From IMG/VR virus record IMGVR_UViG_3300020202_000061, positions 124,001-188,000 of that record: a stretch of 64,000 bases of DNA; one strand, given 5' to 3'. Within the stretch, counting starts at the first letter, position 1. Each line of letters begins with the position of its first letter. Of the stretch, positions 9,544-45,373 are shown in pieces. The notes beneath the pieces are model-generated. The model saw only the letters and a program-made list of their open reading frames with translations. It had not been told where the DNA came from and searched no databases. A program made the translations under genes and the position numbers.

Positions 9544-9656
9544 GAAACCCCAGGGTTCGTCCCAGAGCCTGATCGTCTGTCCTAAATATTCCTGATCTTT
9601 TTACGTGGCTTAAGCCGCGCACGGGCCTTGTGCCCGATCAGGAGGAACTGACGGTT

Positions 9657-14366: not shown

Positions 14367-14379
14367 GGAATGAACAGAT

Positions 14380-19770: not shown

Positions 19771-19790
19771 TAATAGAGGGTATTTGATAG

Positions 19791-21923: not shown

Positions 21924-21937
21924 GGATAAACTGATAA

Positions 21938-25077: not shown

Positions 25078-26523
25078 GTGTCAAAGACCCAGGATATCGA
25101 CGAGAAAACCAAGAAAGAGCGGGAAAAGTTTACCGGGCTGGATTGGGCCTGCATTCCTAGCACCTTGGTACCGCTGCTCGAATATCTGCTCGGTGAACAG
25201 AAGCGGGATGGGAGTTGGAAGCCCGCAGCGAACGTGATGATTTGGGGCGCTCCTGGCATCGGCAAGACCGACATCGTTCGACAGACCGCTCGCTCCTGGG
25301 GCTATTCTACGGTGGCTCTCCATCTGCCCCAGTACGATCCCACTGACATCAAGGGTATCGCCGTCCGTATGGAGGATGGCTCGGTTCGGTGGATGAACAC
25401 CAGTTACCTGCCACAGCAGGTGGTGAAGCGGGTCATCGAGGATACCAAGTCGGTCGGTGTGGATTTCAAGGTGGTCAATCCGGACCGCGATCTGTGGGTG
25501 CGTCTGGTCGATGCCAAGGGGCGCACGGTCCACGCCTGGAACAACGACAAGCGATATCCCGGACTCCGTATGGATGGGGTCCAGATGACCATGACTGAGC
25601 GCACCACCGACGAACACGACCATTTCAAGCTGTTCACGGTGACCTCGAAGTCCTCTCTCAAAGGCTATCGGATCGAAGTGATCGAGAAGGTCATTCTGTT
25701 CCTGGATGAGTTGTCGGCGGCCGATCCGGGCACACAGAACGCTGCACTCCAACTTGTCTTGGATCGCCGTGTCAACGAGTATGACGTGCCCGAGGGTGTG
25801 CCCATCGTGGCCGCAGGCAATCGTGAGAGCGACGGCGCGTTTGTCCAGCAGATGAGCTTGCCCTTGGCGAACCGCTTCTGCCATATCAAGCTGATGCCCT
25901 CGGTGGACGATTTCGTCTCTTACGCGCTCAAGATTGGTTGCCATCCGGATATCGTCTCCCATCTGTATGACTCCGGTAGCAACTCCCTGCTCAAGGTGGA
26001 CGCTGACGCTCTGGCTGACGGCAACATGGGGTTCCCAAGCCCGCGCATCTGGATCAAGTTCTCTGAGCAGTATGACGATGCGCTCCCCGATGATATGATC
26101 AATCGGATGGCTGTGGGGTTCGTCGGCGTCCTGGAAGCGGCGAATTTCTCGATCTTCCGGAAAGTCAGCACGAAGCTGCCCAGCACCGAGGCGATCCTTC
26201 GGGGTCAGGACGTGTCCGACAAGATGCACGGCTTGGATCGGGTCGCTTACAACAACTTGGTCATGCGCTTGCTGTCCAAGCTCAAGGACTACCACACCAA
26301 TTACTACAAACCGGGTGTCCATGAGAATGATCAGGTCCAGGAGTGGCAGACCGCCGTCAACTCGGCGTTCACATTTATTCCGAAATTCCTCGGAGCCGAG
26401 ATCAGCGCATTCGTGGCGTTCCTCATTCCCGGCCTTATCCCGATGGAACATCTGCGCAGCGATGCGTTCGAGAAGTTCTGCAATAAGTACGTGGACATGT
26501 ATCAGAGGGTGAACCGGTTTTGA
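25078..26523 (+). CDS. MoxR-type AAA+ ATPase
   Basis: Walker A GAPGIGKT, Walker B ILFLDE, AAGNR sensor, LANRF arginine finger, SPR.W. Confidence 0.9.
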   Translation: MSKTQDIDEKTKKEREKFTGLDWACIPSTLVPLLEYLLGEQKRDGSWKPAANVMIWGAPGIGKTDIVRQTARSWGYSTVALHLPQYDPTDIKGIAVRMEDGSVRWMNTSYLPQQVVKRVIEDTKSVGVDFKVVNPDRDLWVRLVDAKGRTVHAWNNDKRYPGLRMDGVQMTMTERTTDEHDHFKLFTVTSKSSLKGYRIEVIEKVILFLDELSAADPGTQNAALQLVLDRRVNEYDVPEGVPIVAAGNRESDGAFVQQMSLPLANRFCHIKLMPSVDDFVSYALKIGCHPDIVSHLYDSGSNSLLKVDADALADGNMGFPSPRIWIKFSEQYDDALPDDMINRMAVGFVGVLEAANFSIFRKVSTKLPSTEAILRGQDVSDKMHGLDRVAYNNLVMRLLSKLKDYHTNYYKPGVHENDQVQEWQTAVNSAFTFIPKFLGAEISAFVAFLIPGLIPMEHLRSDAFEKFCNKYVDMYQRVNRF

Positions 26524-27980
26524 GCAATCCACTGAGTCCGAGCGAGCAAACGGTCATCGCCGATCAGGTTAAACAGGCGATGACCCTGCTCACCAAATGC
26601 CCATTGGGCAAGACGTTCAAGGACAACACCTACTATGATGAGGATGCTTATCAGAGGATGGTGGCGGCCAAGACCAGCCTGCTCTATCGTCATCCTCTGT
26701 TCGGGGTGTTGTCCATCGCACTGGTTCTGGTCGAGGATACGACCGGGATCATCGGCACGATGGCGACCGATGGGAAGCATATCTTCTACAGTGCGAAATT
26801 CGTCAATTCGCTGAGCGATGCAAGCTGCGAGTTTGCCGTTGCCCATGAAATCTACCACTGTATTTTCCGCCACTGTGGTCATGTCACGGAGTCGCGTGCC
26901 TTCGACAAGGATATGCGAATTTGGGGCTATGCCACGGACTATGTGATCAACGCGGACCTGAAAGAGGCGAACGTCGGTAAGTTCATCACCGAGATCAAAA
27001 TTCTCTATCGTGCCGAATATCTCGGATGGTCGAGCGAGGAGGTCTATGAGGACCTCAAGAAGAACCCGGAGAAGATGAATTCCAACCAGGGTGATAGTTC
27101 TGATAAGAACGGTACACCTCAGGCTGGTCAAGGTGGATCGGGTGATGCCCCGGATGGTCCCCACGACAAGCATATCCAGGTCGAGGTCATCCCGGACGAG
27201 GACGAGGGCAAGCAGCCCAAGGTCGAGCAGGATGGGTCTGAGATCAAGGTCAGGATGACCCAATCCGAATATGACAAGCTGCGTCAGTCCTGGAACGAGC
27301 AGCTACAGCAGGCGGCCGTGGCCCATCGTGAGGCTCAGCAAAGTCGTGGTGTGGGCTCGATCCCGGCCGGTATGGAGCGCATGCTCGATCACCTGCGTAC
27401 GCCACAGGTGAATTGGAAGGACGTGCTTCGTCGGTTTGTCCGACAGGTCAAACGCCGTGGCTACTCCTACATGAAGCTGAACAAGAACATGTTCCCGCTC
27501 GGCATCAGCATTCCCGGTTATCGCAGGATGATCAACGAACTGGATATTGTGGTCGGGATCGATGCCTCGGGTAGCGTCAGCGAGGAACAGCTTCGCGATT
27601 TTGCAACAGAGCTTCTCGGTATGCTCCAGGCATTCGACAGTTATCATGTCCTGGCCATGTGCTGGGAGTTCCTGGTTATGGAGGAGTCTGTCACCTGGAT
27701 CACACGCCAGAACATTGCGAAGAAACCCATGGATAGTCTGATCCCGTTCTTGAAGGTGATGGCGGGCGGTGGTGGGACTGATCCCAACTCGTGCTTCGAG
27801 TGGCTCAAGCGCAACAAGATGAAACCCAAGCTGCTCGTGATGTTCACGGATGGCGAAATTGGCTCGAACTGGGGCGATCCTAAATACTGTCCGACGCTGT
27901 GGATCATCCACAACTCGAACAAAAAGATCAAAGCCCCATTCGGACACACCGTGCATTATGAGCCAAAACAAACAGCCTAG
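26520..27980 (+). CDS. HExxH metallopeptidase-like + vWA domain protein (DUF2201-type MoxR partner)
   Basis: TMATDG, HEIYH, DYVIN; MIDAS DASGS, GGGT, FTDG. Confidence 0.85.
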   Translation: MSNPLSPSEQTVIADQVKQAMTLLTKCPLGKTFKDNTYYDEDAYQRMVAAKTSLLYRHPLFGVLSIALVLVEDTTGIIGTMATDGKHIFYSAKFVNSLSDASCEFAVAHEIYHCIFRHCGHVTESRAFDKDMRIWGYATDYVINADLKEANVGKFITEIKILYRAEYLGWSSEEVYEDLKKNPEKMNSNQGDSSDKNGTPQAGQGGSGDAPDGPHDKHIQVEVIPDEDEGKQPKVEQDGSEIKVRMTQSEYDKLRQSWNEQLQQAAVAHREAQQSRGVGSIPAGMERMLDHLRTPQVNWKDVLRRFVRQVKRRGYSYMKLNKNMFPLGISIPGYRRMINELDIVVGIDASGSVSEEQLRDFATELLGMLQAFDSYHVLAMCWEFLVMEESVTWITRQNIAKKPMDSLIPFLKVMAGGGGTDPNSCFEWLKRNKMKPKLLVMFTDGEIGSNWGDPKYCPTLWIIHNSNKKIKAPFGHTVHYEPKQTA

Positions 27981-29365: not shown

Positions 29366-30004
29366 TTAGGACCCAAACTGACGCTTAAACTCCGCAGCAA
29401 TGTCGCCGCTATGGAAAGGAAGCACACGAAGCACTCGATTCAGATGCTTGCAGACAACACCACGTTGCGTGGGATTGCGCTCACCAGGGTAGCGTTCTTC
29501 CGGGAAGATAGCCGCATCCAATTGCGCGAGAATTTGCTGGTAGCCCCAGTAGAGAAAGCTGGGATCGGTGCAGTGTAGGCGAAGGTTCCCGACCCACAGA
29601 ATCATGCGGGCCTTCTCGTTGGCCTTGAGGTCGGCATCCTGACCGACTTGTTCCCACTCATCGAACTTGATCAGGCATTTGTAGACGATACCATTCTCGT
29701 CGTATTCCCGCGAGTTCACGTCGAATATCATGGTGTCTCCATCGAATCCGGCCAACCTGATTCCTTTGAGTTCGTTCGCACGAACATTCTGGTTCAGGAA
29801 GTTGCCGTCGATGAACATGGCGATCTCTTTGTAGGTGGCCTCGTAGAGCGGACGTAGCTCTTTCAGGTCCACCAATAAACCGGGTTGAGCAAGCTTGTTG
29901 ATCTCACTCGGAATGTCCTTGTGCTCGATCAGCAAGTCGTGACGACACTGATTGTGGCAAAACATTCCGTGAATATGACTTGGACGAATCGTGTCTACTT
30001 TCAT
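29366..30004 (-). CDS. Hypothetical protein with SWIM-like Zn motif
   Basis: HCTDPSFLYWG...NP..RG.VCKHL..VL. Confidence 0.6.
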   Translation of the reverse strand: MKVDTIRPSHIHGMFCHNQCRHDLLIEHKDIPSEINKLAQPGLLVDLKELRPLYEATYKEIAMFIDGNFLNQNVRANELKGIRLAGFDGDTMIFDVNSREYDENGIVYKCLIKFDEWEQVGQDADLKANEKARMILWVGNLRLHCTDPSFLYWGYQQILAQLDAAIFPEERYPGERNPTQRGVVCKHLNRVLRVLPFHSGDIAAEFKRQFGS

Positions 30005-30534
30005 GGGAGTTGGTTCTTCCAGGCTTCGATCCGGTCGTTGTGGGAATCGGTCGTGTCGTGAATGGTTGGGTCCGGGTTCGCAGCATTGCCTAACGCTCCG
30101 TATGCCCGATAATCATCATTCCCGTACATCCGACCATATCCGGATTCCTGACCGGTCCCGATCCGCAGCCCCTTCCGGGTCTTTCCACGGAAGTCGCGCA
30201 TGGCCTTGGTCGTGGCCCAGCTACCGACCACCATGAAGATCAACAGCCAGACATTCTCCGGGGTCAAGTCAATGGCCTTTGCCCAGGCCGTAAAACCCTC
30301 CACGTCGAAGATTGGCCAAGCCATGATCGCCATGGCCCCGAACAGCATAAGCAGCCTTGGCAGGCGGGAAATCCCGCTTATGGCACGATCAAAACGAGTC
30401 TGCGGCTGAGCGACCTCATCCGGACGCTCCCCAGCGGTCATTCCACCCATGATATTCCCACCCATGGACTGAACTATCTGCCAGCCCTGACTAAGCATGC
30501 CCATACCTGGAAACGGCACATCGATTACCCTCAC
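30001..30534 (-). CDS. Holin, GTA 3TM type
   Basis: FDRAI.G..RLPR.L..FG...W..FD..F..A..L.PE.VWLL..VVG.W resembles the GTA holin family; TAAATA upstream. Confidence 0.65.
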   Translation of the reverse strand: MRVIDVPFPGMGMLSQGWQIVQSMGGNIMGGMTAGERPDEVAQPQTRFDRAISGISRLPRLLMLFGAMAIMAWPIFDVEGFTAWAKAIDLTPENVWLLIFMVVGSWATTKAMRDFRGKTRKGLRIGTGQESGYGRMYGNDDYRAYGALGNAANPDPTIHDTTDSHNDRIEAWKNQLP

Positions 30535-30567: not shown

Positions 30568-32868
30568 CTATTTGCCCTGGATGAACTTCTTCCGGAGAGT
30601 CCGGATGGTGTGGGCGGATTTCGGGTCCTTGAGGAGAGCCGCCAATCCGAAATGCAACGGCTGGGGCCACTCACCCGGATAAACCCAGGTTGAAGTTTCC
30701 GTTTCCCAATCCAGGACGGGTTCGAATTCGTTCTGGACCACAGCTAGGAAATTGTAGTAATGGAATTCACCCCGCTTGAACACATAGAGTGGGATCATCT
30801 GTACCGGACCACGATATCCAGCTTCTTCCTGGACCTCGCGCTGAGCGGCCTCGATGGGGTTTTCACCCCGGTCGATAGCGCCACCCCAGGTCCCCCAAGT
30901 GTGAGGTTGTTCGACATGACCCGTGGTGCGGCCGGGTGGTGGTCGTTTGGAGCGAAACGGCAGTAGGATGCGACCCGTGTCTTTGGCTATTATGATGCAA
31001 CCAGCACCACGGCGACCCCAAAATCCGGTTTGACGGAGTGCTTCACCGTGGTCCTGATCGTCTCTCACAACCTCGCGGAGATTTTGGATGGTCCGTGGAA
31101 TACGTCCGGTCTTCATGAACTGCTGGACACCTACACCCTTGATGTCGTGCCATTTCCCATCTACTACCAAACCGATTTGGGTGATCGGTTGTTCATGGTG
31201 CTTAGCAATCCATTGTGCGGTCAAGGCACCATCTCGGGGACTCGCTGCATCTATGGACAATTGTCCACGGTTATTGAATCCGACACGCACCCATCCCTGA
31301 CTGTTTGCGTATTCCACGACATCATCAGTCCGGGTGAATCCTGGACCTGCTTTCCAGTTAGCACCAAACAATGAGAGATTTTTCAGGAACACGTCGTAAT
31401 GGTGTGAGGCGTCTGGGTCCGCCTCGGGATCACTTAGACCCCAATCCACTGTGAGATGTTGTCCAGTGCTGGGTTTGAACCAGTAGCCTATAGTGTGGAA
31501 TTCGGTGGTTTTGCCCTTGTCGATGATCGGATAGAGTTTACCTATGGGATTGGCGGTTTCCGCAGCCATTCTACGGCCGATGGGTTCACTAGGTTGGATC
31601 ACCCATTCACCCTTGGGAGTCATTACTCCGGGGAAATGACTCGATGAGATGCGCTCGTAATACTGATCCATGAAGTCATCCGGAACCTTGCCGTAGTGCA
31701 GGATCAGAGGGCGGTCAAACGGACCAGCCTTGGACTCCTCGTCCCAGAGTTGGAGGATGCAGATAATCTTTTGAGCCCCACGGAATCCGATAACGTATTC
31801 GGTGCGTAGAGTATGAGCACCTGCTCCACCCTCGGGCTTGTAGGCGGAGGCTTTATAGCGACGGGTGAGCAAATCAATTGCTCTGGCGTAGTTGTCCTCG
31901 GCTACATTCGTTGGCGGTATTTCTGGTTGGTTTTTGATCTTTCTCAGATGATAAGCGATCCCGTAGAGACTTCCGCGAGCAGATTTTTCCATGGCGTGCG
32001 AAATGATACGCATGAGGAAAGCTTCAAACACCATATCGGTGAGCTTTCGATTGAGTGGTCCGGTCCCTTCTAGTAGATCGTGAAGCGATTTGGCGAACAC
32101 CTCTAACATCTGTTCACGATATTGCGGATCATCATAGTAGTACATCGCAGCCACACCATAAGCATCTCTGGCCAAACCAGGATGCACTTTGTGAATCATC
32201 TCGGCGAAAGCACGTGGAATTACATTGGTCTGACTATCCTCATCGGCTAGACCGGCTTGTTCCCGGATCATCGCACACACGATCATCGGGTAGGAGTTGA
32301 ACTTACGCATGGCGCTGGTTGAACTACTCCAGGCGGTCATCATGTTGGTGGACCAATACGATCCGCCAATACTAGCACGGCTTGGAAAGGCTTCACTACC
32401 GGGGTCCTTATCGCGATCCCAATACTTGGCAGGCGGATTCGGCACCACACCATGTGTCATGATCGAACGCAAGGCGTGTGTGGTGGTACCGTGGTACATG
32501 ATGATGGGCTTGCGAAACTGAGCCTCTTTGATCTCGGTGCGACCATGAAATACGTCTTCACTATCGTAGTAGTTCGTATCGACCATGTGGTCTTTGTCTT
32601 TGAAATAGTCCGCGAGCCTAACGGCTTTTGCAGCTTCTTCACGATCCAAGAATTCTCCGGTATCCGTGTAAAATCCCTCGATCACATCATCCCCTAGCAT
32701 GAATTCAAACTCGTCGTAGTCGGTTTCGGGATTCATTCCAAGGTCCTTCATGGCCTGGATCATGGCATCCCGATGAACCGTCTTGGCTTTTCCGATGATG
32801 CGATCCTCTGGTGTGTAAAGGAATGCCACACCTTCGATCTTGGCCTCTAACAGATCGGTCAGCTTCAT
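30568..32868 (-). CDS. Multi-domain putative head-packaged polyprotein: ART-like domain, repeated unknown domain, C-terminal Nudix hydrolase
   Basis: MKLTDLLE start; IMYHGTT; Nudix box GGAIDRGENPIEAAQREVQEEAGY; IKE and LRE at domain boundaries. Confidence 0.7.
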   Translation of the reverse strand: MKLTDLLEAKIEGVAFLYTPEDRIIGKAKTVHRDAMIQAMKDLGMNPETDYDEFEFMLGDDVIEGFYTDTGEFLDREEAAKAVRLADYFKDKDHMVDTNYYDSEDVFHGRTEIKEAQFRKPIIMYHGTTTHALRSIMTHGVVPNPPAKYWDRDKDPGSEAFPSRASIGGSYWSTNMMTAWSSSTSAMRKFNSYPMIVCAMIREQAGLADEDSQTNVIPRAFAEMIHKVHPGLARDAYGVAAMYYYDDPQYREQMLEVFAKSLHDLLEGTGPLNRKLTDMVFEAFLMRIISHAMEKSARGSLYGIAYHLRKIKNQPEIPPTNVAEDNYARAIDLLTRRYKASAYKPEGGAGAHTLRTEYVIGFRGAQKIICILQLWDEESKAGPFDRPLILHYGKVPDDFMDQYYERISSSHFPGVMTPKGEWVIQPSEPIGRRMAAETANPIGKLYPIIDKGKTTEFHTIGYWFKPSTGQHLTVDWGLSDPEADPDASHHYDVFLKNLSLFGANWKAGPGFTRTDDVVEYANSQGWVRVGFNNRGQLSIDAASPRDGALTAQWIAKHHEQPITQIGLVVDGKWHDIKGVGVQQFMKTGRIPRTIQNLREVVRDDQDHGEALRQTGFWGRRGAGCIIIAKDTGRILLPFRSKRPPPGRTTGHVEQPHTWGTWGGAIDRGENPIEAAQREVQEEAGYRGPVQMIPLYVFKRGEFHYYNFLAVVQNEFEPVLDWETETSTWVYPGEWPQPLHFGLAALLKDPKSAHTIRTLRKKFIQGK

Positions 32869-33758
32869 GCCTGATGATCCTCGGCCGCGCCACGAGTTCT
32901 CTGAGTCCTACCCTGGCCTCGGTTCAGAACTTCCTTGGCTCTGATCTTGTCGAGCAGACCCGGTAGGCTGCGCATGAACTGCTGATCATTCCGGGCATTC
33001 TGATTGAATGAGTCATGGGTGAGTTTGACCGGGTCCTTTGAGAGATCAATACCCTCAGGCGTCCGGTTGGAAACCCAAATCAGATAGAGGTCCTTGCCCC
33101 GACGCGGACTCACGAATACAGCCTCACAACGATAGGGATTACCACCCTTGGTCTGCCACACGCGCATAGCCTCGGCCATGTCCTTGAAGATGGAGGAGGC
33201 ACCATACACGGTCAGAGTGTTGCGGAAAAACGCCCCATCGTAGCCCTGAATGGTCCATTCCTCGTTGGTGTGTTTCCCGGCTTTCTCCCACATGGTCTTC
33301 TTGATGAAGTTCATGTCAGTGTAGTCCTGACGGTAGATGTGGGAGGAGTTTGGCATGCCTCCGGAATGTCCAGCCTGAGCCCACCCGGCATTTTGCTCTT
33401 GCCGCTCACGCTCACGGTTCTGCTGCTCACGACGGGCATCCGCAGCACGCCAAAAATCATCCCAGGCTTTCTTCTTGCCGGGATCGGATGGACGACCACC
33501 CGGATAGTTCCAATATTCGGAATTCGGTGTAGTCTCGTTGTGGACTCCATCCTTGATCAATCCGTATGCCTGATTGATTTGTTTGGCCAGAGCCTCGTTG
33601 CCACCGCGATCCGGATGGTTATGGAAGATGATTCTGCGGTAGGCCCGTTTGATATCGGCCGGGGTCTTGCCCTGGGGATCGAAACCCGCGTTGGTGAAAA
33701 CCTCCACGGCTTGAGCCACGGTCATCTCTTTGAGGATACGGAGTTCGTTCAGTTTCAT
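32865..33758 (-). CDS. J-domain (DnaJ-like) protein
   Basis: IKRAYRR..HNHPDRGG....KQINQAY (HPD motif); MKLNEL start. Confidence 0.8.
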   Translation of the reverse strand: MKLNELRILKEMTVAQAVEVFTNAGFDPQGKTPADIKRAYRRIIFHNHPDRGGNEALAKQINQAYGLIKDGVHNETTPNSEYWNYPGGRPSDPGKKKAWDDFWRAADARREQQNRERERQEQNAGWAQAGHSGGMPNSSHIYRQDYTDMNFIKKTMWEKAGKHTNEEWTIQGYDGAFFRNTLTVYGASSIFKDMAEAMRVWQTKGGNPYRCEAVFVSPRRGKDLYLIWVSNRTPEGIDLSKDPVKLTHDSFNQNARNDQQFMRSLPGLLDKIRAKEVLNRGQGRTQRTRGAAEDHQA

Positions 33759-36700
33759 GATAGTGATTTCCTCAGAGCGGTCCCCTCTGGTGTGGTATTG
33801 GTCCAGACCAGCTTCTCCTGGGGAAACTCCTTCTGCAATTCCTTGACCAATGCGGTGCCGATTCCACGACGCTGGAACTCCGGTTCCACCTGTATATAGT
33901 TGATGAAAATTTTCCCCTGATACTGTGTCCAGTTCAGACGACCCGCAACCCGCCTGGGTGGCCAGAGGTCCCCGGCGGTGGAGCGGTCGTAGAAATAGAT
34001 GGTCCCATCGGTCTGACCATGGTGGTGACCGGTCACATCGTTATGGAAGCTATACTGCTGGGGTAGGTCTGCACTTTCCACTACCTGCTTGAGGCTTTCG
34101 TGCTCGGCTTCCTGTTGGGCGATGAACTGCTTCAGTGGCATCTTGGGTAGACCCTGAACCTGTTGGTTCATATTGTGGGACTTCCAGAGTTCTTTCCAAT
34201 GCAACATTCTGGCTTTGGTGAATGGAATCCCATACACGTTGAGACCCTGCTGCTCCATCGCCTTCATTTCGGCATACCGAATCGGAGGCATATCGTGTTC
34301 GGCACGCATGCGATTTCCGATGGCCTCGTGCTGCTCCTCCGCACGTTTCTTCAGGAACATGGCGCGATCTTCAGGAGACCAATAGGTCTGTTTCTGCTCT
34401 CCCTTGAGACGCTCGAAACGACGAACGATGTCCGAGACGATCTGATCCAGACGAGCCGAACCACTGTACTCTTTCACCTCAATATCACCAACTTCCGTAC
34501 GGACATTCACCTCAATCACGTGATTGGTGTGTTTGCGGTCGTACTTGTGAGGCTTCTCCATGGCGGGACGTTGATTATAGTAGTTGTTGGGGCGTTCGAT
34601 CTGGATTTCGATACGACGACCCGCTTTGGTCCAGAGATAGGCCCAGCCCATAAGATTCGAGGTTTCGGTTTTGTCGGTGAGTTTGTCATCCAGGGCGTTC
34701 GCGATCTTCCGGGCAAACTTCCTAATAAACTCCCTGTTATGACCGGGCTGGTTGATGGTCATGTGATCGGCCTCACCACGACCCGGACGTAAATCATAGG
34801 TCTCAATCACTTTGAAGCTGGCGCGGGTCAAGAAGATGATCTGCTCGGGCTCTCGCTCATTGATCGCGCCGGTCCCCTCATCGATTACCGCATCATATCC
34901 AGCCTTCAGCAAGAGTTGAGTTTGTTCCTTGGCCGAGCGCATGGGCCACTTCTTGGTGCCCCAGCCGTCCTCGGTGGTTTCACCCTCGTGGTTGATCTGG
35001 AATGCCCGCATGAACGTGTTTACTGGGGCATACTTGCCGGTCCACTGATAGTTACGCTTGATCCAGCGCAGGTCTTTATCGGATACGTTGAGACCCATCC
35101 GCCACAGCATGTTGCGGACACGACCCCAACCGAGATTGTTCAACTCTTTTAGACGAAGTGGATTCCTCGCAGTGTTCTGGAGCACACGCACGTAGCGGGC
35201 CGCAGCCCCATACCAGATGTCGGCGGGATGCCGCAGCACATACTTCAGAGGGTAACCATAGACTCCCATGGGGTCAGTGTGATTGGGCTTGTCATAGGCG
35301 GAGCGATCCAGCTTGTCGTTCCGGAAATTCCGGAACTGCACGTAGTAGTGCTCCGGATTGATTTCCTTCTTGCGGACCATGTTGCGATACTTGCGATGGA
35401 ACGCCTCGAAGCGCTCCGGGAACATGTCCTGGTAATGGACCTCGTTGAGTTGTCCCTCATTGATGCCGGACCGGAGAAACTTGGTGAGTGCGGCATACCC
35501 GTCCAGGGTGATACCCTTGTGGAACTCTCCTTGTATACCGATGTTGACACGCTCGGTTTCGCGAGGATCGATCATACGCTTGTTCATCAGAGCACGAATC
35601 GTAGCCTGGGCATCCAACATCGTGGGGGCATCGATCATCAGTTTCGAGCCCACGATGGAACCGCGCGTCCAACCATTCTCGTAAGCCTGACGATAACGTT
35701 CCTCATCCATGAGGTCGCCCAGGTCTACCCCTTCAGGGGCTTTGATCCCATACTTGTCAGGTTCCGCAAAGAGCTTCTGCTCGTGATGTGGTTCCGCATA
35801 GATGTCGGCAGTATCATTCAGGAATGGGTGCCACTGTTCGAGCTTACCACTCCTGGCGTGATACCAGAACTTGGTGATATTCGGATTGATGTCGCTTTCA
35901 CTGAGGAACTGACTGATCTCTCCTGGCGACCGATAAAGCATGCTACCTACATCCGCCATATCCACGAGAAGATTATCGATGGTTCTGCGATCAATCAGTT
36001 TTCGACTGATAAGGTAGCGTAAAGTAGCCTGAGCTTCGACTTTGTTGTTGGAATCCAGATAAAGATCACCCCGACTCTTGATAACTCCACGAACCCAACC
36101 ATCCTCGGCGGCCTCCACGGAATAGTCGGCTCCGGTTTTACCTTCCCGATAATCCAGTCCGAACTTGGCGGGATCAGCCATTAAAGCTTCATCATGGTGG
36201 GGTCCGCCTGAATCGACATTACTGAAACGAACGGTCCATGGTACGAACTGCTTGGTTCGAACGTTGAACCAAAACTTGGTCGCAACACGAACCTCCTCAG
36301 TGAGTGATTCGGCCACCTTGCGCTTGAACGGGACGAACAAGGGATTCTCGGATGCGACGGGAGCGACCTTCTTGAACTTGGTGTGACCACCATGTCGAGG
36401 GTTTGGGAATCCCTCATCGTGAACCTGCTCGGGCCAATCGATCTGACCATGCGAGTAGGGCCACAATCCGAGACGCTCCAGGACACGCTTTAGTTTAGAC
36501 CCGGTCAGGATGAAATCACCCTGTTGACGACGATCCGTATAGTAGTCTCCCGACTCGACGCCACCGCCGCCATCCTCATTATCATAATCGTCGGGATCAC
36601 GATGTTTGAAATCGTCCTCGGCATGCTTTAGAACGACTAATGCGCCGTGATTCAGGAATTCTTGCGGGGTGATCGTGCGCTTTCCGAGTTTCGTCGCAAC

Positions 36701-36940
36701 GTGATGGACAATCGCATTCAGGGCTTTGCCAAGCTCGGGCTTATCGGCGGCGAACACCAACGGGTAATAGCCCATCTCTCGGGCATCCGCTTCTCCACCC
36801 AATCCGTACGCGTCCTGGACGAAATCACCCACACGCGGCTCCAATCCCCATCGCTGCACACTGGGATCACGCGCCACATCCAGTGTGGTGCCATGGTAGA
36901 GGGTGCGTGGCATACTCTCGTGCAGGTCGGTCAGCTTCAT
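33755..36940 (-). CDS. Multi-domain putative head-packaged polyprotein: ART-like N-terminus, two copies of an unknown domain, C-terminal GNAT
   Basis: MKLTDLHE start; TLYHGTT; IQVEPEFQRRGIGTALV...TPEG GNAT motif A; LTE, LSE, INE/LNE, VVE at domain boundaries. Confidence 0.7.
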   Translation of the reverse strand: MKLTDLHESMPRTLYHGTTLDVARDPSVQRWGLEPRVGDFVQDAYGLGGEADAREMGYYPLVFAADKPELGKALNAIVHHVATKLGKRTITPQEFLNHGALVVLKHAEDDFKHRDPDDYDNEDGGGGVESGDYYTDRRQQGDFILTGSKLKRVLERLGLWPYSHGQIDWPEQVHDEGFPNPRHGGHTKFKKVAPVASENPLFVPFKRKVAESLTEEVRVATKFWFNVRTKQFVPWTVRFSNVDSGGPHHDEALMADPAKFGLDYREGKTGADYSVEAAEDGWVRGVIKSRGDLYLDSNNKVEAQATLRYLISRKLIDRRTIDNLLVDMADVGSMLYRSPGEISQFLSESDINPNITKFWYHARSGKLEQWHPFLNDTADIYAEPHHEQKLFAEPDKYGIKAPEGVDLGDLMDEERYRQAYENGWTRGSIVGSKLMIDAPTMLDAQATIRALMNKRMIDPRETERVNIGIQGEFHKGITLDGYAALTKFLRSGINEGQLNEVHYQDMFPERFEAFHRKYRNMVRKKEINPEHYYVQFRNFRNDKLDRSAYDKPNHTDPMGVYGYPLKYVLRHPADIWYGAAARYVRVLQNTARNPLRLKELNNLGWGRVRNMLWRMGLNVSDKDLRWIKRNYQWTGKYAPVNTFMRAFQINHEGETTEDGWGTKKWPMRSAKEQTQLLLKAGYDAVIDEGTGAINEREPEQIIFLTRASFKVIETYDLRPGRGEADHMTINQPGHNREFIRKFARKIANALDDKLTDKTETSNLMGWAYLWTKAGRRIEIQIERPNNYYNQRPAMEKPHKYDRKHTNHVIEVNVRTEVGDIEVKEYSGSARLDQIVSDIVRRFERLKGEQKQTYWSPEDRAMFLKKRAEEQHEAIGNRMRAEHDMPPIRYAEMKAMEQQGLNVYGIPFTKARMLHWKELWKSHNMNQQVQGLPKMPLKQFIAQQEAEHESLKQVVESADLPQQYSFHNDVTGHHHGQTDGTIYFYDRSTAGDLWPPRRVAGRLNWTQYQGKIFINYIQVEPEFQRRGIGTALVKELQKEFPQEKLVWTNTTPEGTALRKSLS

Positions 36941-36942
36941 CC

Positions 36943-37479
36943 TTAGCCCCTCGGCGGTACCGGTAGGCGGAACCGCTCCGCACGACGCAGCCAGCCCTTC
37001 AGAAACACCTGCTGTTTCGGATCATTCGCGGCGATCTGCTGGAAGAACTTGATGCGCTCGTCCACGATGGCGTTCTGGAAGTATGGACCCATCGCCTGCT
37101 GGGCGGCAATCGCACGGTCACGGCTTTGCGGACCTAGGATGCCGTCCTGATCGACCGGACCAAACCCTGCGAGGTTGATCACCCTCTGCATGATCCGGAT
37201 CGCCTTACGTGGCCCGTGGTTGATCCGCATGTCCAGGATCAGGGTCATCGGGGGATTCGGCAGGGTGTGGATGCGTGGGTCCGTCAGGTATCGCTTCTCA
37301 TAGATTTCACGAGCCTCACCCTCGGTGAGCTTCTTTACGTCGTCAATCCGGGCCGGACGATGCAACCATTCCCGCAGGGTTTTCTGGGTGATTCCGAAAT
37401 TTGTCGGCCCACCTCTGTCATTGGGATGATTGACATACCCACCCTCATGCCTCAAAACCTCACTGATTGGATCGACCAT
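36943..37479 (-). CDS. Endolysin, glycoside hydrolase family 108 with peptidoglycan-binding domain
   Basis: HEGGYVNHPNDRGGPTNFGIT; DGILGP; Q..FLKGW.RR; TAAATA upstream. Confidence 0.92.
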   Translation of the reverse strand: MVDPISEVLRHEGGYVNHPNDRGGPTNFGITQKTLREWLHRPARIDDVKKLTEGEAREIYEKRYLTDPRIHTLPNPPMTLILDMRINHGPRKAIRIMQRVINLAGFGPVDQDGILGPQSRDRAIAAQQAMGPYFQNAIVDERIKFFQQIAANDPKQQVFLKGWLRRAERFRLPVPPRG

Positions 37480-37668
37480 AGCTGTTTTCTCCCAGATTCC
37501 CAGGTATTTAGGACTCCGGGAGGTTAAAATGAAAACCCGAATACTGTGTGATATGTGTCACGAAAAAAGTATGGTAAACCCCTGATTTGTTTGTTGACAG
37601 GAGAAAAACCCTGGGGTATTCTCTGCTGGCCCACGCTGTGTGGGTAACCGAATGGAGAGCGCAAGCAA

Positions 37669-38538
37669 ATGAAGCGTATTCTTTTCTCGGCCATGTTGGT
37701 CCTGGGTGCCCTCGCGGTTACCCCGGCAATGGCCTCAGGCAACCATCACAACAATGGTTGTGACGGCGGAAACAACTCCTGCAATACTACGACCAACACC
37801 ACGAACAACACCACCAATAACCAGGGCGGCCAAGGCGGCGCTGGTGGTCAGGGTGGTGCGGGCGGCCAGGGCGGCACTGGTGTCGGTGTCGGCGTGGGCG
37901 TGGGAATCGGTGTGGGTCAGGGCGGAAACGCCACGAACTCCAACACCAACAACGCCAACAACACCAACACGAACACCCAGGGCCAGGGTCAAACCCAGGG
38001 CCAGGGTCAGTCCCAGTCGAACTCGAACGTCGTCACCAACGTGAACGGCCAGAACCAGAACCAGTCCAACTCCAACAACAACTCCGACACCAACAACAAC
38101 GACGTGTCGGTGAACGTCGAAGGGGCCGACGTGGAGGCCGCCGCCAACGCGGTGCCGGTCTACAACAGTCCCATCGTCGCCAGCGAGGACACCTGCATGG
38201 GCTCGATCAGTGGCGGCGCGGGCTTCGGCGCGATGTCGTTCACGGTCGGCGTCACCATCGGTTCGACCTACACCGATGAGAACTGCCAGAACCTCAAGTG
38301 GTATCGCGAGTTCGCCAAGTCCGGTCTGGACAAGGCCGCGATGAGCATCGCCTGTCAGGCGAACGATGGTCGCAACGTGGTCGCCCTGGAAGCGCAGGGT
38401 TTCGACTGCGGCGATCTGACCGGCGGCACGGTTCAGGTGTCGGCGGTTTCCGTGAAGGATGCCGTGCAGACGGCGTCGGCGGCTCCGGCTGAGGACAAGG
38501 TCATCAATCCGACTCACAAGCGCGGCAACAACAAGTAA
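37669..38538 (+). CDS. Secreted Asn/Gln/Gly-rich low-complexity protein
   Basis: Signal peptide (AMA site), N/T/Q/G tracts, Cys-containing C-terminal domain; own promoter and terminator. Confidence 0.75.
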   Translation: MKRILFSAMLVLGALAVTPAMASGNHHNNGCDGGNNSCNTTTNTTNNTTNNQGGQGGAGGQGGAGGQGGTGVGVGVGVGIGVGQGGNATNSNTNNANNTNTNTQGQGQTQGQGQSQSNSNVVTNVNGQNQNQSNSNNNSDTNNNDVSVNVEGADVEAAANAVPVYNSPIVASEDTCMGSISGGAGFGAMSFTVGVTIGSTYTDENCQNLKWYREFAKSGLDKAAMSIACQANDGRNVVALEAQGFDCGDLTGGTVQVSAVSVKDAVQTASAAPAEDKVINPTHKRGNNK

Positions 38539-38591: not shown

Positions 38592-38633
38592 CATTTGTCT
38601 CCCAGCAGCCTATATAGGTTGGGGGATTTTTGT

Positions 38634-39512
38634 ATGAAATTCGATCTTATCAGTGATTTCCACGTCGAAATGAATGATCCGTTCTCGACCCAATCCACGT
38701 GGCGTGACGGTGATCCGACCTTCTATAATTGGCCGAGACAGAAGAAGTCCGATGTCCTGGTGATCGCGGGGGATTCCTCGAACCGTCCAGAATTCACTAT
38801 AGAAGTGGTGAAAGAGGCCCGAGCCTATTACGAGTCGGTGCTGTTCGTTGATGGCAACCACGAGCACTACGTGGGCTATCAGAACCATTCTCGCACGGTC
38901 GGCCGCAACATGAACGAGTTGAGGAAGTTCGCCACGGAAACCCCTGGGGTAACCTATTTGGATGGTGAGATCACGGCTCGTTTCGGCTCGACCCTGGTGA
39001 TCGGAGCGAATGGTTGGTACGACTGGAAAGGCAATCAGATTCTGTCTCGTGAAATGCAGCACATGTACTGGAAGTCGGATTCCAACGATGCTACCTGCAT
39101 CCGTTTCGATCCGGATGGGTATGCGGACAAACTCGCTCGGTCGCATGCGGATCAGCTTGTGGCTCATGTCACAGCAGCCCAATCTGATGAGGCGGTGGAT
39201 AAAATCCTCGTCATTACCCATACCATCCCCAACCTCAAAGGAATCGTTCCTGATTCACACCGTTGGGGGTATTTGAACGGGTCCTATGCGAATACCGAAA
39301 TGCAACGCGTGGTCAAGGCGGATACGGCGAAGAAAATCAAGATTTGGGTTTACGGGCACACCCATTTCCTGTATGATTTCGTCGATCAGGGGGTGCGTTA
39401 TGTGACGAATCCCCGTGGTTATCGCGGTGAGAAGCGCAGCCCGGATTTCACCGGGATCAAGCAGATCGATCTCGATGACATCGGTTCAGCATTTGGGGGA
39501 ATTGATGTGTGA
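38634..39512 (+). CDS. Calcineurin-like metallophosphoesterase
   Basis: SDFH, AGD, GNHE, TH, GHTH, NPRGY motifs. Confidence 0.9.
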   Translation: MKFDLISDFHVEMNDPFSTQSTWRDGDPTFYNWPRQKKSDVLVIAGDSSNRPEFTIEVVKEARAYYESVLFVDGNHEHYVGYQNHSRTVGRNMNELRKFATETPGVTYLDGEITARFGSTLVIGANGWYDWKGNQILSREMQHMYWKSDSNDATCIRFDPDGYADKLARSHADQLVAHVTAAQSDEAVDKILVITHTIPNLKGIVPDSHRWGYLNGSYANTEMQRVVKADTAKKIKIWVYGHTHFLYDFVDQGVRYVTNPRGYRGEKRSPDFTGIKQIDLDDIGSAFGGIDV

Positions 39513-39711
39513 TTATGCCGAACGCCCGTTGAACCCGTCTGAGGCTGAATTGGTTCGTGCCGGAGCCATCATCAGCCGCTATCAAGAGGGAGACCTGTTC
39601 TCCCGAATCAAGGCGATCCACGCGGGTATCTCGATGGCTTTCGGCACTCCTATGCCCACGGATGAGGAGCTTCGAGCCCTCATGGACGTGATCACGCCAG
39701 AGGATCAGTAA
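39505..39711 (+). CDS. Hypothetical protein
   Basis: Start at ATG 39505 overlapping previous gene. Confidence 0.5.
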   Translation: MCDYAERPLNPSEAELVRAGAIISRYQEGDLFSRIKAIHAGISMAFGTPMPTDEELRALMDVITPEDQ

Positions 39712-40234
39712 ACACCGGGGTTTCGCCTCGGAATAGGATGTTGGCGTCCTTGAAATCATCCATGCATCCGCGTGCGCGAGGCGCTTGTTTGGTCGAATAG
39801 ATCAGGTTAAGCGCCTCGACCATTTTGGGGAATTTCTGAGTCCACTCTGCGTGGTGCTCAATTATGAATTCCGCACGATCTGGTCGTTTCCGTTCGAGCG
39901 CGTCATAGTAGGACGTGATGAAGTTGTAGAGAGGAAACGGAATCTCCCTTATTTTTAGCGGCTCTAGGCGTTGAGCCACGTAGGCATCACTGAGCCAAAC
40001 CAGCTTCCCGATGATGCGGGGCATATGTGGGTTGTCCGCGTTGGCGCGTGCCACCTTGAGGAACTCGAAGTAGCAGTTGTCATAGGTCGCGAACACCTTG
40101 AGCACATACTTCGCGCCGGGTTTTTGCCAAACCGCACCATGGAATCCCTGGCCCAACCCCTGGTATCCGGCGTCAATCAAACGCTGGTCGATCTGGTTGA
40201 ACCGCTGAGGACGGGTGAGTTCGAATAACTTCAT
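39692..40234 (-). CDS. Minimal protein kinase-like protein
   Basis: LGQGFHGAVW, VLKVF, DFKDANIL, TDP; MKLFEL start 7 nt after TAAATA. Confidence 0.75.
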   Translation of the reverse strand: MKLFELTRPQRFNQIDQRLIDAGYQGLGQGFHGAVWQKPGAKYVLKVFATYDNCYFEFLKVARANADNPHMPRIIGKLVWLSDAYVAQRLEPLKIREIPFPLYNFITSYYDALERKRPDRAEFIIEHHAEWTQKFPKMVEALNLIYSTKQAPRARGCMDDFKDANILFRGETPVFTDPLA

Positions 40235-40301: not shown

Positions 40302-40844
40302 ATGGCCACAGGCACCCGTTACGTTCCGATCCAGATCAGCCAGATGCAGGCGGTCCTGGAGCATGACATGGGTTTCGTCCGTGCCGACGAGAGCACGTCC
40401 TGGGAGGCTATCTGGACCCGTCAGGTCGCCACCAAGGGTGGTCGCACGTTTCCCTATTCGGTCAAGGTCTATTCCAGCGTGGACCTGCGCACCAACGTGA
40501 GCCGCGACTCCGGCGAGGACGCGATCCGTCTGGTTCTCAAGGACGACATTACTGGCTACGCCGTGAAGGCGGCTGAGAAGCGGGTGTTCCGCACGAAGTC
40601 CGCCCTGATCAATCTGCGCGAGCGTGCGCGTGAACTCTTCCAGGAAGTCGTTGACGGTCCTCATTGCCCGAAGTGCGGAGCCCTGATGAAGGCCCGCCAG
40701 GGCGGGCCGGGCAAGCATTGGTTCCTCGGTTGCACCCATTACAACCCAGACAAGTCCTGGCACTGCACGGGCACGCGCCGGGTCAGTGATATCACCCCGG
40801 AGCAGAAGGTCGCCATGGGTATCCCCACCGATACCACGTCATGA
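40302..40844 (+). CDS. Protein with topoisomerase-type C4 zinc ribbon
   Basis: CPKCGALM..R......FLGC..Y....C; sigma70 promoter and GGAGG RBS. Confidence 0.7.
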   Translation: MATGTRYVPIQISQMQAVLEHDMGFVRADESTSWEAIWTRQVATKGGRTFPYSVKVYSSVDLRTNVSRDSGEDAIRLVLKDDITGYAVKAAEKRVFRTKSALINLRERARELFQEVVDGPHCPKCGALMKARQGGPGKHWFLGCTHYNPDKSWHCTGTRRVSDITPEQKVAMGIPTDTTS

Positions 40845-45321: not shown

Positions 45322-45373
45322 CGCTTGCCTCAGAACCAAATCCCCACCATATTTGGGGTTGGAAAGAAGAATA

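Follow-up and report, generated by a model that had tools for sequence, protein, structure and literature searches.

The locus considered here raises the question of whether three adjacent, mostly multi-domain genes placed between an endolysin gene and a holin gene encode enzymes which a phage builds into its own head and delivers to the next host along with its DNA. The genes (open reading frames A, B and C; ORF A, ORF B and ORF C) lie on the minus strand of a 64,000-nucleotide stretch, hereafter the window, which corresponds to bases 124001-188000 of one 347,504-bp viral contig (IMG/VR record IMGVR_UViG_3300020202_000061; 54.5% GC) representing an uncultured phage from a soil metagenome. A preliminary description had interpreted their products as capsid-packaged polyproteins which are cut inside the head into separate enzymes and injected with the DNA. 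The present analysis favours this interpretation in its broad form: summed over its variants, the reading that the proteins are made late, targeted to the head interior by a leader, trimmed by a gp21-type protease and ejected with the DNA is given a probability of roughly 0.8. The genes concerned are the following (lengths in amino acids, aa; ART, ADP-ribosyltransferase).

36943..37479, minus strand: endolysin with GH108 and PG_binding_3 domains, opening the operon (Pfam E 8e-25 and 2e-12; PHROG endolysin E 7.5e-39)
33755..36940, minus strand: ORF A, 1061 aa, with leader, ART-like module, two repeat modules, large ART-like 'V' domain and GNAT
32865..33758, minus strand: ORF B, 297 aa, with leader, J-domain and C-terminal domain
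30568..32868, minus strand: ORF C, 766 aa, with leader, 'Cn' domain, ADP-ribosyltransferase, repeat module and Nudix
30001..30534, minus strand: holin-like protein, GTA_holin_3TM (PF11351 E 7e-6, 26.9 bits against a cut-off of 24.8; syntenic in the relative described below)

The order continues beyond the holin-like gene with genes for proteins of 212 and 124 aa. Stop and start codons overlap by 4 nucleotides (nt) at both the A/B and the B/C boundaries, and 2 nt separate the endolysin from ORF A; since starts and stops overlap or nearly touch, the genes from endolysin to holin are taken as one operon, probably transcribed late, in a jumbo phage of the T4 superfamily. All genes of the region are intact and the standard genetic code suffices to read them. 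The location between an endolysin and a holin, as given in the preliminary description, agrees with the GH108 and GTA_holin_3TM genes that flank the trio, and its reading of the N-termini is likewise correct: ORF A begins MKLTDLHE, ORF B MKLNELRILKE and ORF C MKLTDLLE, while a further ORF at 39692 starts MKLFEL. A relative on a 409-kb contig keeps the gene order of the operon, with orthologues that are 61-81% identical, and adds one GIY-YIG gene and one extra leader-bearing gene; the former, homing-endonuclease-like, sits between the endolysin and the ORF A orthologue (L002:9342-9998). A megablast search of the region against 50,697 phage genomes gave no match, and no isolated phage is similar to it at the DNA level.

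The shared beginnings extend well beyond the operon. In a crude gene call of our own (439 genes), the pattern M[KR][LIV]x[DEQ][LF] is found at the start of 10 genes, where position-wise frequencies predict 0.42 (P 3e-11), and all ten of these leaders carry [LIVF]xE within the first 14 residues, as compared with 21% of all genes. Three further leader genes were found by hand, encoding proteins of 400 aa (MRLLDLLIE), 337 aa (MRLKDLTNPLFE) and 101 aa (MKLTDLKE), so that the total is at least 13. The synonymous codons used for the conserved leader residues vary freely between genes, and therefore selection on the leader acts on the peptide. The capsid-targeting sequence (CTS) of T4, MKTYQEFIAE, has been defined experimentally (PMC8442874); positions 4 and 7 of it are important to targeting, positions 8 and 10 to cleavage (PMC9026906). 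As with T4's IPI, IPII and IPIII internal proteins and its Alt, a short N-terminal leader ending in hydrophobic-x-Glu is found here on unrelated proteins of one phage. The leader of the present phage differs in being MKLxDL...LxE, 8-12 aa long, and the proteins that bear it are far larger than those of T4, with 2-5 modules.

Five consecutive leader genes form a second cluster (genome 7448-15033, L003, minus strand) among structural genes, within a few kb of the tail sheath gene (PF17482). Their products (708, 438, 400, 433 and 549 aa) begin MRLLDLLE, MRLLDFLTE, MRLLDLLIE, MRLLQLLE and MKLIDLLLE, respectively. The first joins the leader to a YHGT stretch and an ART-PolyVal domain (PF18760, E 2.5e-37); two others are made up of three repeat modules, each following V/I-x-E and YGYW, and look like polyproteins of an internal-protein-like module. 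The 101-aa MKLTDLKE gene (genome 4390-4695, L003, minus strand) is located just upstream of the tail sheath gene and is start-coupled to its own upstream gene; it encodes a YHYT...GGVYMA mini-module, and its product is comparable in size to the T4 internal proteins. Three more leader proteins (genome 34600-36537, 51374-52387 and 344975-345838; L004, L005 and L006) have a longer leader ending PL(Y/F)E, one with an Amidoligase_2 domain and two being paralogues with an MTPW..AHR..H motif.

Head genes of the T4 type are present in the same genome. These include a gp21-family protease (Peptidase_S77, PF03420; genome 67165-67794, E 1e-23) and a gp23-type capsid protein (PF07068; genome 64790-66013, E 3e-81), the latter extended at its N-terminus by roughly 52-63 residues (a cut at the proposed LME|N would give 52; the Pfam match runs from near residue 64). 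Between the two genes lies that of a 336-aa coiled-coil scaffold-like protein (genome 66096-67106; L001:273-1337, minus strand) in which [LI]xE occurs 18 times where composition predicts 5.3, more densely than in any other gene of the genome, and the protease itself has 7 against 2.8 expected; this LxE richness mirrors that of T4 gp22 and gp21. The nearest isolated relatives of the protease, at about 41-45% identity, belong to the T4-superfamily jumbo phages RsoM2USA, PA5oct, Atu_ph07 and RaK2-like, and about 5% of isolated phage genomes match it. A complex prediction of the protease with residues 1-30 of ORF A scored 0.00, a result which is neutral either way. The protease, the capsid protein and the LxE-rich scaffold, together with seemingly late genes and an ADP-ribosyltransferase cargo, form a further set of resemblances to T4.

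The timing of expression can be approached through a motif upstream of the operon, where the preliminary description had placed a late promoter.

37504..37512, minus strand: late-promoter-like motif CCTAAATAC, 25 nt upstream of the endolysin start codon

The T4 late promoter is TATAAATA, which the motif of the window resembles. Genome-wide, 7-mers around [CG]TAAATA[CT] (44 motif instances) are enriched 9-11x within 80 nt upstream of genes, and the motif stands before the sheath gene, the gp23-like capsid gene, the protease operon, large structural-looking genes, the endolysin and several leader genes. Standing ahead of the sheath, capsid, protease-operon and endolysin genes, the motif probably acts as a late promoter, in agreement with the earlier placement. 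A look through sequencing runs for the region listed two soil DNA runs, kept as contigs, and no RNA run, although it was not aimed at RNA. The leader-bearing units that were checked lie at or downstream of such a motif. A scan of the operon for sigma-70 promoters and terminators gave no more sites than shuffled sequence. Another sequence, CTTGACA(A), is likewise enriched across the genome and has the appearance of a host-type early promoter.

The question of internal processing turns on how ORF A and ORF C are built. Five unannotated module families (Ay, repeat, V, Cn and Cy) were defined by local hidden Markov model (HMM) iteration over fetched proteins; when eight isolated segments were compared with Pfam at E up to 10, no family was recovered for Ay, Cy, Cn, the repeat module, V or the C-terminus of ORF B. 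The layout of ORF A is given below (pLDDT, predicted local distance difference test, from AlphaFold 2, AF2; iE, independent E-value).

36917..36940, minus strand: leader MKLTDLHE (residues 1-8), ending LHE; low pLDDT over residues 1-20
36425..36916, minus strand: residues 9-172, YHGT module 'Ay' (local HMM family of 7 proteins, A 11-172)
36296..36304, minus strand: junction LTE213-215, in linker 173-220 ahead of repeat module 1 (pLDDT <50 over 173-220; the orthologue P0002 keeps SLTE|EV)
35903..36280, minus strand: residues 221-346, repeat module 1 ('HH' module, W..HH..GWxR; local HMM 221-324, iE 3e-33)
35897..35905, minus strand: junction LSE346-348, boundary of repeat modules 1 and 2 (pLDDT <50 over 348-354)
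35465..35875, minus strand: residues 356-492, repeat module 2 (local HMM 356-465, iE 1e-26)
35441..35449, minus strand: junction LNE498-500, immediately ahead of the V domain, VHY... (linker 472-498 with pLDDT <50)
34085..35440, minus strand: residues 501-952, 'V' domain (local HMM 501-about 900; AF2 pLDDT >90)
34076..34084, minus strand: junction VVE953-955, ahead of GNAT (VAE at the equivalent orthologue position)
33758..34063, minus strand: residues 960-1061, GNAT acetyltransferase (PF00583, A 1005-1052, E 2.2e-5, 25.1 bits against a cut-off of 20.7)

ORF C is arranged in a similar manner.

32845..32868, minus strand: leader MKLTDLLE (residues 1-8); the orthologue begins MRLTEIIRE|AKI
32551..32844, minus strand: residues 9-106, 'Cn' domain (local HMM family, C 10-106; pLDDT >90)
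32524..32532, minus strand: junction IKE113-115, ahead of the ART domain (block pLDDT 59)
31579..32523, minus strand: residues 116-430, ADP-ribosyltransferase fold 'Cy' with a helical insert at about 210-344 (local HMM C 123-408)
31558..31566, minus strand: possible junction AAE435-437, in linker 430-439 (pLDDT <50; AAE kept in the orthologue)
31084..31506, minus strand: residues 455-595, repeat ('HH') module (local HMM 460-565, iE 6e-31; pLDDT 85-95)
31072..31080, minus strand: junction LRE597-599, ahead of Nudix (VAE in the orthologue)
30619..31035, minus strand: residues 612-750, Nudix hydrolase (PF00293, C 619-736, E 3.4e-14, 53 bits against a cut-off of 21; PHROG 1198 E 8e-22)

Hydrophobic-x-Glu motifs at the domain junctions had been noted in the preliminary description, with structure prediction suggested as a check, and the models bear the placement out. 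The AF2 models with alignments (mean pLDDT 77 for A 1-960 and 78 for C 1-615) consist of confident domains separated by low-confidence linkers, and, by these models and the HMM envelopes, six junctions (LTE, LSE, LNE and VVE in ORF A; IKE and LRE in ORF C) are found just upstream of domain starts. The [LI]xE motifs of ORF A have their Glu at eight positions (8, 215, 348, 495, 500, 599, 688 and 695), the first five of which fall in or beside residues with pLDDT <50, which make up 17% of the model (binomial P about 0.006). In ORF C, LLE8 precedes Cn, IKE115 precedes Cy and LRE599 precedes Nudix, with IRE203 and LLE267 internal. Between the window and its orthologues the junctions pair as IKE/IKE, AAE/AAE, LRE/VAE, LTE/LTE, LSE/LSE, LNE/INE and VVE/VAE; in orthologues of 61-65% identity the junction Glu is kept while the neighbouring residues change, and EIKE|AQFRKP is unchanged in the 61%-identical ORF C orthologue. 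AAE435-437 is only a possible site and the weakest, its P3 residue being Ala and not L/I/V.

Gain, loss and rearrangement of modules in relatives respect the same boundaries. In P0002, an ORF A orthologue, repeat module 2 is absent exactly between FLSE and INE|VHY, and the domain start that comes after the leader in ORF A is placed there (as SMPRTLYHGTT) after an internal IQE; the ORF A orthologue of the 409-kb relative has an additional N-terminal YHG module and is without repeat module 2. P0004, P0012, P0011 and P0055 hold shared modules in other orders with [LIVF]xE ahead of each (in P0004, the Cn-type domain starts after an internal LLE|AK), P0038 is another such shuffled architecture, and in the V-domain homologue P0005 a WG(N/D)L(K/A)E linker recurs between modules. 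Compared across these proteins, the modules are evolutionary units bounded by the motif.

The same modules are also encountered as free-standing proteins with leaders of their own. An exhaustive HMMER search with ORF A returned 824 proteins at E<1e-3, almost all via the V domain, and in 120 of 150 homologues this domain begins 4-25 residues from the N-terminus, so that it is stand-alone and leader-bearing. At the V-domain boundary, P1 is Glu in 127 of the 150 (85%) and Ala in 14, P3 is L/I/V/F in 137 (91%) and P2 varies; where V is internal, LNE, INE, LKE or LLE lies directly ahead of it. Leaders of V homologues such as MKTFQTFLIE, MKSFKNYISE, MKRFKTYLKE and MRLRELLSE match the pattern of T4 MKTYQEFIAE and are near-identical to it in this respect. 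In contig L009, the stretch from a GH108 endolysin to a GTA-type holin encodes GNAT, V and Nudix in separate genes, of which those for V and Nudix each have a leader: the V protein begins MKLSELIQKPAQLDE|VHY, and the 172-aa Nudix protein starts MKLIDLFSIIRE, directly before the residues that match those after LRE599 of ORF C. Other Nudix homologues have the leaders MRLLELKE or MKYLDFYSPIKE; whether stand-alone or fused, they carry a leader or an internal IKE, LKE, LRE, VSE, ISE, IHE or IRE right before the domain start, and the partners in fused forms are ARTs of the PF03496, PF18760 or Cy type. Of nine large IMG/VR records that hold a V-domain gene, 8 also match Peptidase_S77; the five whose completeness is >=90% are all among these, and the one record lacking a match is 56% complete.

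With regard to the individual activities, the preliminary description had listed two YHGT ART-like modules, Nudix, J-domain and GNAT. In ORF C, the Cy model (C 119-408) is clearly an ART fold: its structural matches in VIA are led by 9ld3_A, a Tpt1-like enzyme (Z 10.5), followed by Arr (8.0) and pertussis toxin S1 (7.4), with TreX, PltA, PARPs including PARP13, Tpt1 and DarT further down and ARTs making up more than 30 of the top 50, and against the ESM Atlas it matches a viral DarT/PARP cluster at a template-modelling (TM) score of 0.60. A candidate H-Y-E triad, read by eye as conserved in family members, consists of H126 (YHGT at C125), Y171 (GSYW) and E210 (ADED). The Cn domain occurs in up to three copies in P0012 and P0038, and its AF2 model gave no structural match. 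The Nudix box GX5EX7REUXEEXGU, read in the translation, is intact at residues about 663-686, which together with the Pfam match bears out the Nudix call. A word-indexed search with C residues 1-610 recovered the query alone, and an IMG/VR scan with the ORF C alignment found nothing.

The corresponding module of ORF A, with YHGT at residue 15, is probably an ADP-ribosyltransferase fold in which H-F-acidic replaces H-Y-E. By ESM features, the segment A 9-175 resembles Arr-ms in 63 of 100 matches (score 0.92), and its further neighbours (PARP/DarT, Tox-ART-HYD1, ART-PolyVal, AcrIF11 and exotoxin A) are all ART-clan families. The AF2 model is of mid-to-low confidence over Ay, and hence the fold is not confirmed; of the two YHGT modules, that of ORF C is thus supported by its fold and that of ORF A by language-model features. 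A joint family of the YHGT modules (Ay, Cy and the N-terminal module of the second cluster) was considered and dropped, since hhalign aligned the YHGT strand only (probabilities <=14%). In the model of the V domain, an ART-like core (about 503-730) is accompanied by an alpha/beta subdomain resembling HPF/RaiA (730-850) and by helices. The top structural match of the core is 9k3a_B, from the cyanophage A4 pre-ejectosome (VIA Z 7.6; Foldseek E 1.9e-3), followed in VIA by about 11 ART folds (NatR, diphtheria-toxin homologues, PARP1/2/3, ParT and AcrIF11) at Z about 5, which lies under the level that the tool calls reliable, so that 'ART-like' is provisional for V. From its model, A 501-730 is a probable ART-type domain, and the near-invariant residues H554, D556, Y561, Y563, R696, E697 and Q700 point to an enzyme. 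The V-family profile returned nothing significant among sequences of the Protein Data Bank (PDB), neither A 9-172 nor A 501-730 has a Pfam or PDB sequence match, and a shape search of the ESM Atlas with the 960-residue ORF A model was uninformative (TM below 0.3). The GNAT call stands on a PF00583 match above the cut-off and on the acetyl-CoA motif Q/RxxGxG/A, present as QRRGIG.

The repeat module, of about 100 aa, occurs in at least 11 copies in the genome (two in ORF A, one in ORF C and at least 8 others), and its structural matches are weak (gelsolin-like, Z about 5; PD-(D/E)XK-like, TM 0.46). One further copy-bearing protein of the window is a 535-aa product (45353-46960, plus strand) in which an N-terminal Acb1 anti-CBASS phosphodiesterase domain (PF23474, E 3e-22) is fused to the repeat module.

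ORF B is built differently. Its leader, MKLNELRILKE (33726-33758, minus strand), has the counterpart MKVNQFRTVLKE|MT in the orthologue and is followed by the J-domain.

33534-33686, minus strand: J-domain of ORF B, with HPD at residue 48

The Pfam DnaJ match (E 1e-5, 25.6 bits) falls just under the cut-off of 27.8; 38 of 39 PDB sequence matches are J-domains (best E 7e-5), and with the HPD tripeptide these settle the J-domain call. The C-terminal domain matches a viral DUF3293/SAM-lyase cluster at TM 0.40 from a poor model, which is a lead only. The [LI]xE motifs of ORF B are confined to its leader, which holds two, and the protein is not a polyprotein. The earlier proposal of capsid-packaged polyproteins is partly supported: the protease, the capsid protein, the scaffold, the leader family and the co-occurrence speak indirectly but well for packaging and leader trimming, and the polyprotein reading fails for ORF B.

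We infer packaging, cleavage and injection, as well as all substrates, by analogy with the systems in which these steps are known. The leader, with the consensus M-(K/R)-L-x-(D/E/Q)-(L/F)...(L/I/V)-x-E common to at least 13 proteins, would dock the newly made protein onto the prohead scaffolding core in the manner of the T4 CTS; the gp21-type prohead protease would then cut after Glu and remove the leader, and the mature protein would be kept inside the head and ejected with the DNA. In ORF A and ORF C, the protease would also separate some or all modules at the (L/I/V)-x-E linkers in the manner of a polyprotein. The cargo would be a host-takeover or anti-defence set, predicted to comprise three ART-type domains, GNAT, a Nudix of a habitually ART-fused subfamily, the J-domain protein, which could recruit host DnaK, and the repeat modules.

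Since every prerequisite that can be examined in silico was found, packaging with leader removal is the best reading of the locus. Several points nevertheless weigh against it or against the internal cuts. The phage is uncultured, and packaging and cleavage are predictions from its sequence; tblastn of ORF A, ORF C and a stand-alone V protein against the 50,697 isolated phage genomes returned Nudix or GNAT pieces or nothing, and since the V family with its leader has no match there, no characterised virion anchors the case. Several leaders of 4-5 residues (the kinase-like protein, some V homologues) are short for a targeting signal. Some [LI]xE lie inside folded domains (A 599, 688 and 695; C 203 and 267), one ORF C junction has Ala at P3, and an LxE immediately ahead of a conserved domain may belong to the fold itself or be left over from a former leader. 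The [LI]xE density of ORFs A, B and C is near the expectation from composition with no strong depletion, and an argument from depletion was accordingly dropped. Furthermore, the protease homologues of phiKZ and SPN3US cut at (S/A/G)xE (PMC5694885), and T4 Alt keeps many internal LxE uncut, being trimmed at its ends only (PMC9026906).

The most likely variant, with slightly better than an even chance, is packaging and leader trimming combined with cutting at the joints into separate enzymes; internal cutting, plausible in itself, rests on the location of the motifs, on their conservation in an orthologue and on the occurrence of modules as separate leader-bearing genes elsewhere. That last observation can also be turned the other way: if the modules once existed as leader-bearing genes, their fusion would automatically leave LxE at the joints, and ORF A and ORF C could be packaged and injected as intact multi-domain 'polyvalent' proteins from which the leader alone is removed, like T4 Alt, with its retained internal LxE and trimmed ends, or N4 virion RNA polymerase. 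Polyvalent proteins are often delivered uncleaved (PMC5512222), and this alternative is a serious if doubtful one; it does not readily account for the retention of junction Glu and hydrophobic P3 in orthologues whose flanking linker residues diverge, for the motif ahead of the tandem repeat modules of the second cluster, which is harder to see as a relic, or for the position of the sites in linkers which the models predict to be disordered and protease-reachable. Packaging might instead be accompanied by expulsion of the N-terminal modules, acting as long propeptides or assembly chaperones, so that only the C-terminal enzymes (GNAT and Nudix) stay in the head, much as giant phages of the phiKZ, 201phi2-1 and SPN3US type clear N-terminal fragments from the head and use several sites per propeptide. 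The repeat module would suit such a role, being abundant, often N-terminal to an enzyme and devoid of a recognisable catalytic signature, but among the upstream modules there are also an ART, well conserved and with a plausible H-Y-E triad, and a V domain whose polar residues are near-invariant; both have the look of enzymes more than of disposable spacers, and expulsion is judged very unlikely.

A reading with no packaging at all is unlikely too, though less remote than expulsion of the upstream modules. The proteins would then be late cytoplasmic enzymes, their common N-terminus would serve translation initiation, a shared helix or some other localisation, and the LxE motifs would be coincidental. 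MK- starts are indeed common in bacteria and phages, the operon includes lysis genes whose products are non-virion, and ORFs A, B and C are known from metagenome sequence. Against this, the leader is about 24-fold over expectation with varying synonymous sites, the P3/P1 pattern with a free P2 runs through 150 homologues, the leader resembles the experimentally defined T4 CTS and the genes co-occur with a T4-type protease; besides, enzymes directed against host transcription, translation or defence would be of little use at lysis unless carried to the next cell. Within the favoured reading of packaged, leader-trimmed and joint-cut proteins, a wider proposal can be made tentatively and at less than even odds: T4-superfamily jumbo phages may use a 'cleavable-linker grammar', in which a CTS-like leader and (L/I/V)xE linkers let modules fuse, split and reorder and still be loaded, to be freed by the prohead protease in the style of RNA-virus polyproteins.

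Compared with known systems, the arrangement combines familiar elements in a different way. Relative to T4, cleavage-type motifs occur here also between modules, the packaging is a prediction, and the ARTs are putatively of the H-Y-E type (Arr/DarT/PARP-like) and not of the R-S-E Alt/VIP2 clade. The 'polyvalent' proteins (Iyer, Burroughs, Anand, de Souza and Aravind, 2017; PMC5512222) likewise unite many effector domains (ART, GNAT, kinase) in one polypeptide with Nudix as a fusion partner or neighbour, lie in a late or virion gene context and are extensively shuffled between relatives, ART being their commonest domain; the ART-PolyVal domain PF18760 itself is found here in the second-cluster protein and in fused Nudix homologues. 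ORF A (ART-like modules and GNAT) and ORF C (ART and Nudix), with mosaic architectures in relatives, fall within that class. For polyvalent proteins, delivery has been proposed via MuF or portal fusions and processing by embedded metallopeptidase or assemblin-like domains (PMC5512222), whereas Pfam found no MuF, portal-fusion, MPTase or assemblin-like peptidase domain in ORFs A, B and C, and the route predicted here is a CTS-like leader with a T4-type prohead protease acting at linker motifs. In addition, most modules here (V, Ay, Cy, Cn and repeat) match no Pfam family.

The ejection or inner-body proteins of phiKZ, 201phi2-1 and SPN3US are also head-internal, cut after Glu at several sites each by a gp21-related protease and ejected with the DNA, and their paralogues share N-terminal propeptides ending x-E, which in SPN3US gp53 and gp54 are identical (PMC5694885). 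They differ in their (S/A/G)xE sites, lineage, virion RNA polymerase and cargo of mostly non-enzymatic paralogue families, while the head genes of the present phage are of the T4 (gp23) type and its motifs of the form (L/I/V)xE. The cyanopodophage A4 pre-ejectosome protein (9k3a chain B), the best structural match of the V core, is a very large, capsid-internal, ejected protein; the match is modest, there is no detectable sequence similarity to V, and A4 is a podovirus with another head assembly. The candidate novelties are thus the leader sequence, the (L/I/V)xE linkers paired with a T4-type prohead protease, the H-Y-E ARTs and several unannotated module families.

Phage proteins injected with the DNA act before any phage gene is expressed and thus form the first line of counter-defence and host takeover; beyond a few model phages they can be found only by virion proteomics. 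If the favoured reading is true, the injected arsenal of uncultured T4-superfamily phages could be listed from sequence, here at least 13 proteins with several ART-type domains, GNAT, Nudix, amidoligase, J-domain and a kinase-like protein. It would offer candidate new enzyme families (the unannotated V domain alone has more than 800 homologues) and alternative leader tags for packing foreign proteins into phage heads, and would join the literature on T4 CTS/gp21 processing to that on 'polyvalent' effectors. Should the linker grammar hold as well, the leader would predict the whole injected proteome of uncultured phages, V and Ay would belong to it as two new ART-like families, the repeat module would be a functional analogue of the T4 internal proteins, and the injected J-protein would recruit host DnaK to refold ejected cargo.

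Apart from the operon, the window carries a further leader-bearing gene, which the preliminary description had named a kinase.

39692..40234, minus strand: minimal kinase-like protein, 180 aa, start MKLFE|L, separate transcription unit (PHROG 15752, T7 gp0.7 kinase, E 5e-4)

The start was read correctly, while the kinase identity is weak: in addition to the PHROG match, GxGxxG..VLK and DFKDAN (DxKxxN-like) motifs were read by eye, and Pfam gave no match. In the 409-kb relative the gene is duplicated, with paralogues starting MRIDE|I and MKLFE|L. It is flanked by a calcineurin-like metallophosphoesterase (38595-39512, plus strand) and a small protein with a topoisomerase-type zinc ribbon (40302-40844, plus strand).

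Other features of the window lie on the plus strand. Divergent from the endolysin, a 289-aa protein (37669-38538) has a signal-peptide-like start and long low-complexity N/T/G/Q-rich repeats, with no family match. Four very large ORFs (1578, 1796, 710 and 704 aa; 9630-24052) have no Pfam match and may encode fibre or baseplate proteins; the stretch has raised GC (up to 62%) and a strongly positive GC skew, and a late-promoter-like motif stands before the first ORF. At 25078-27980, an AAA_5/MoxR-like ATPase gene is followed by that of a DUF2201 (VWA-type) protein, and the pair is kept in the relative.

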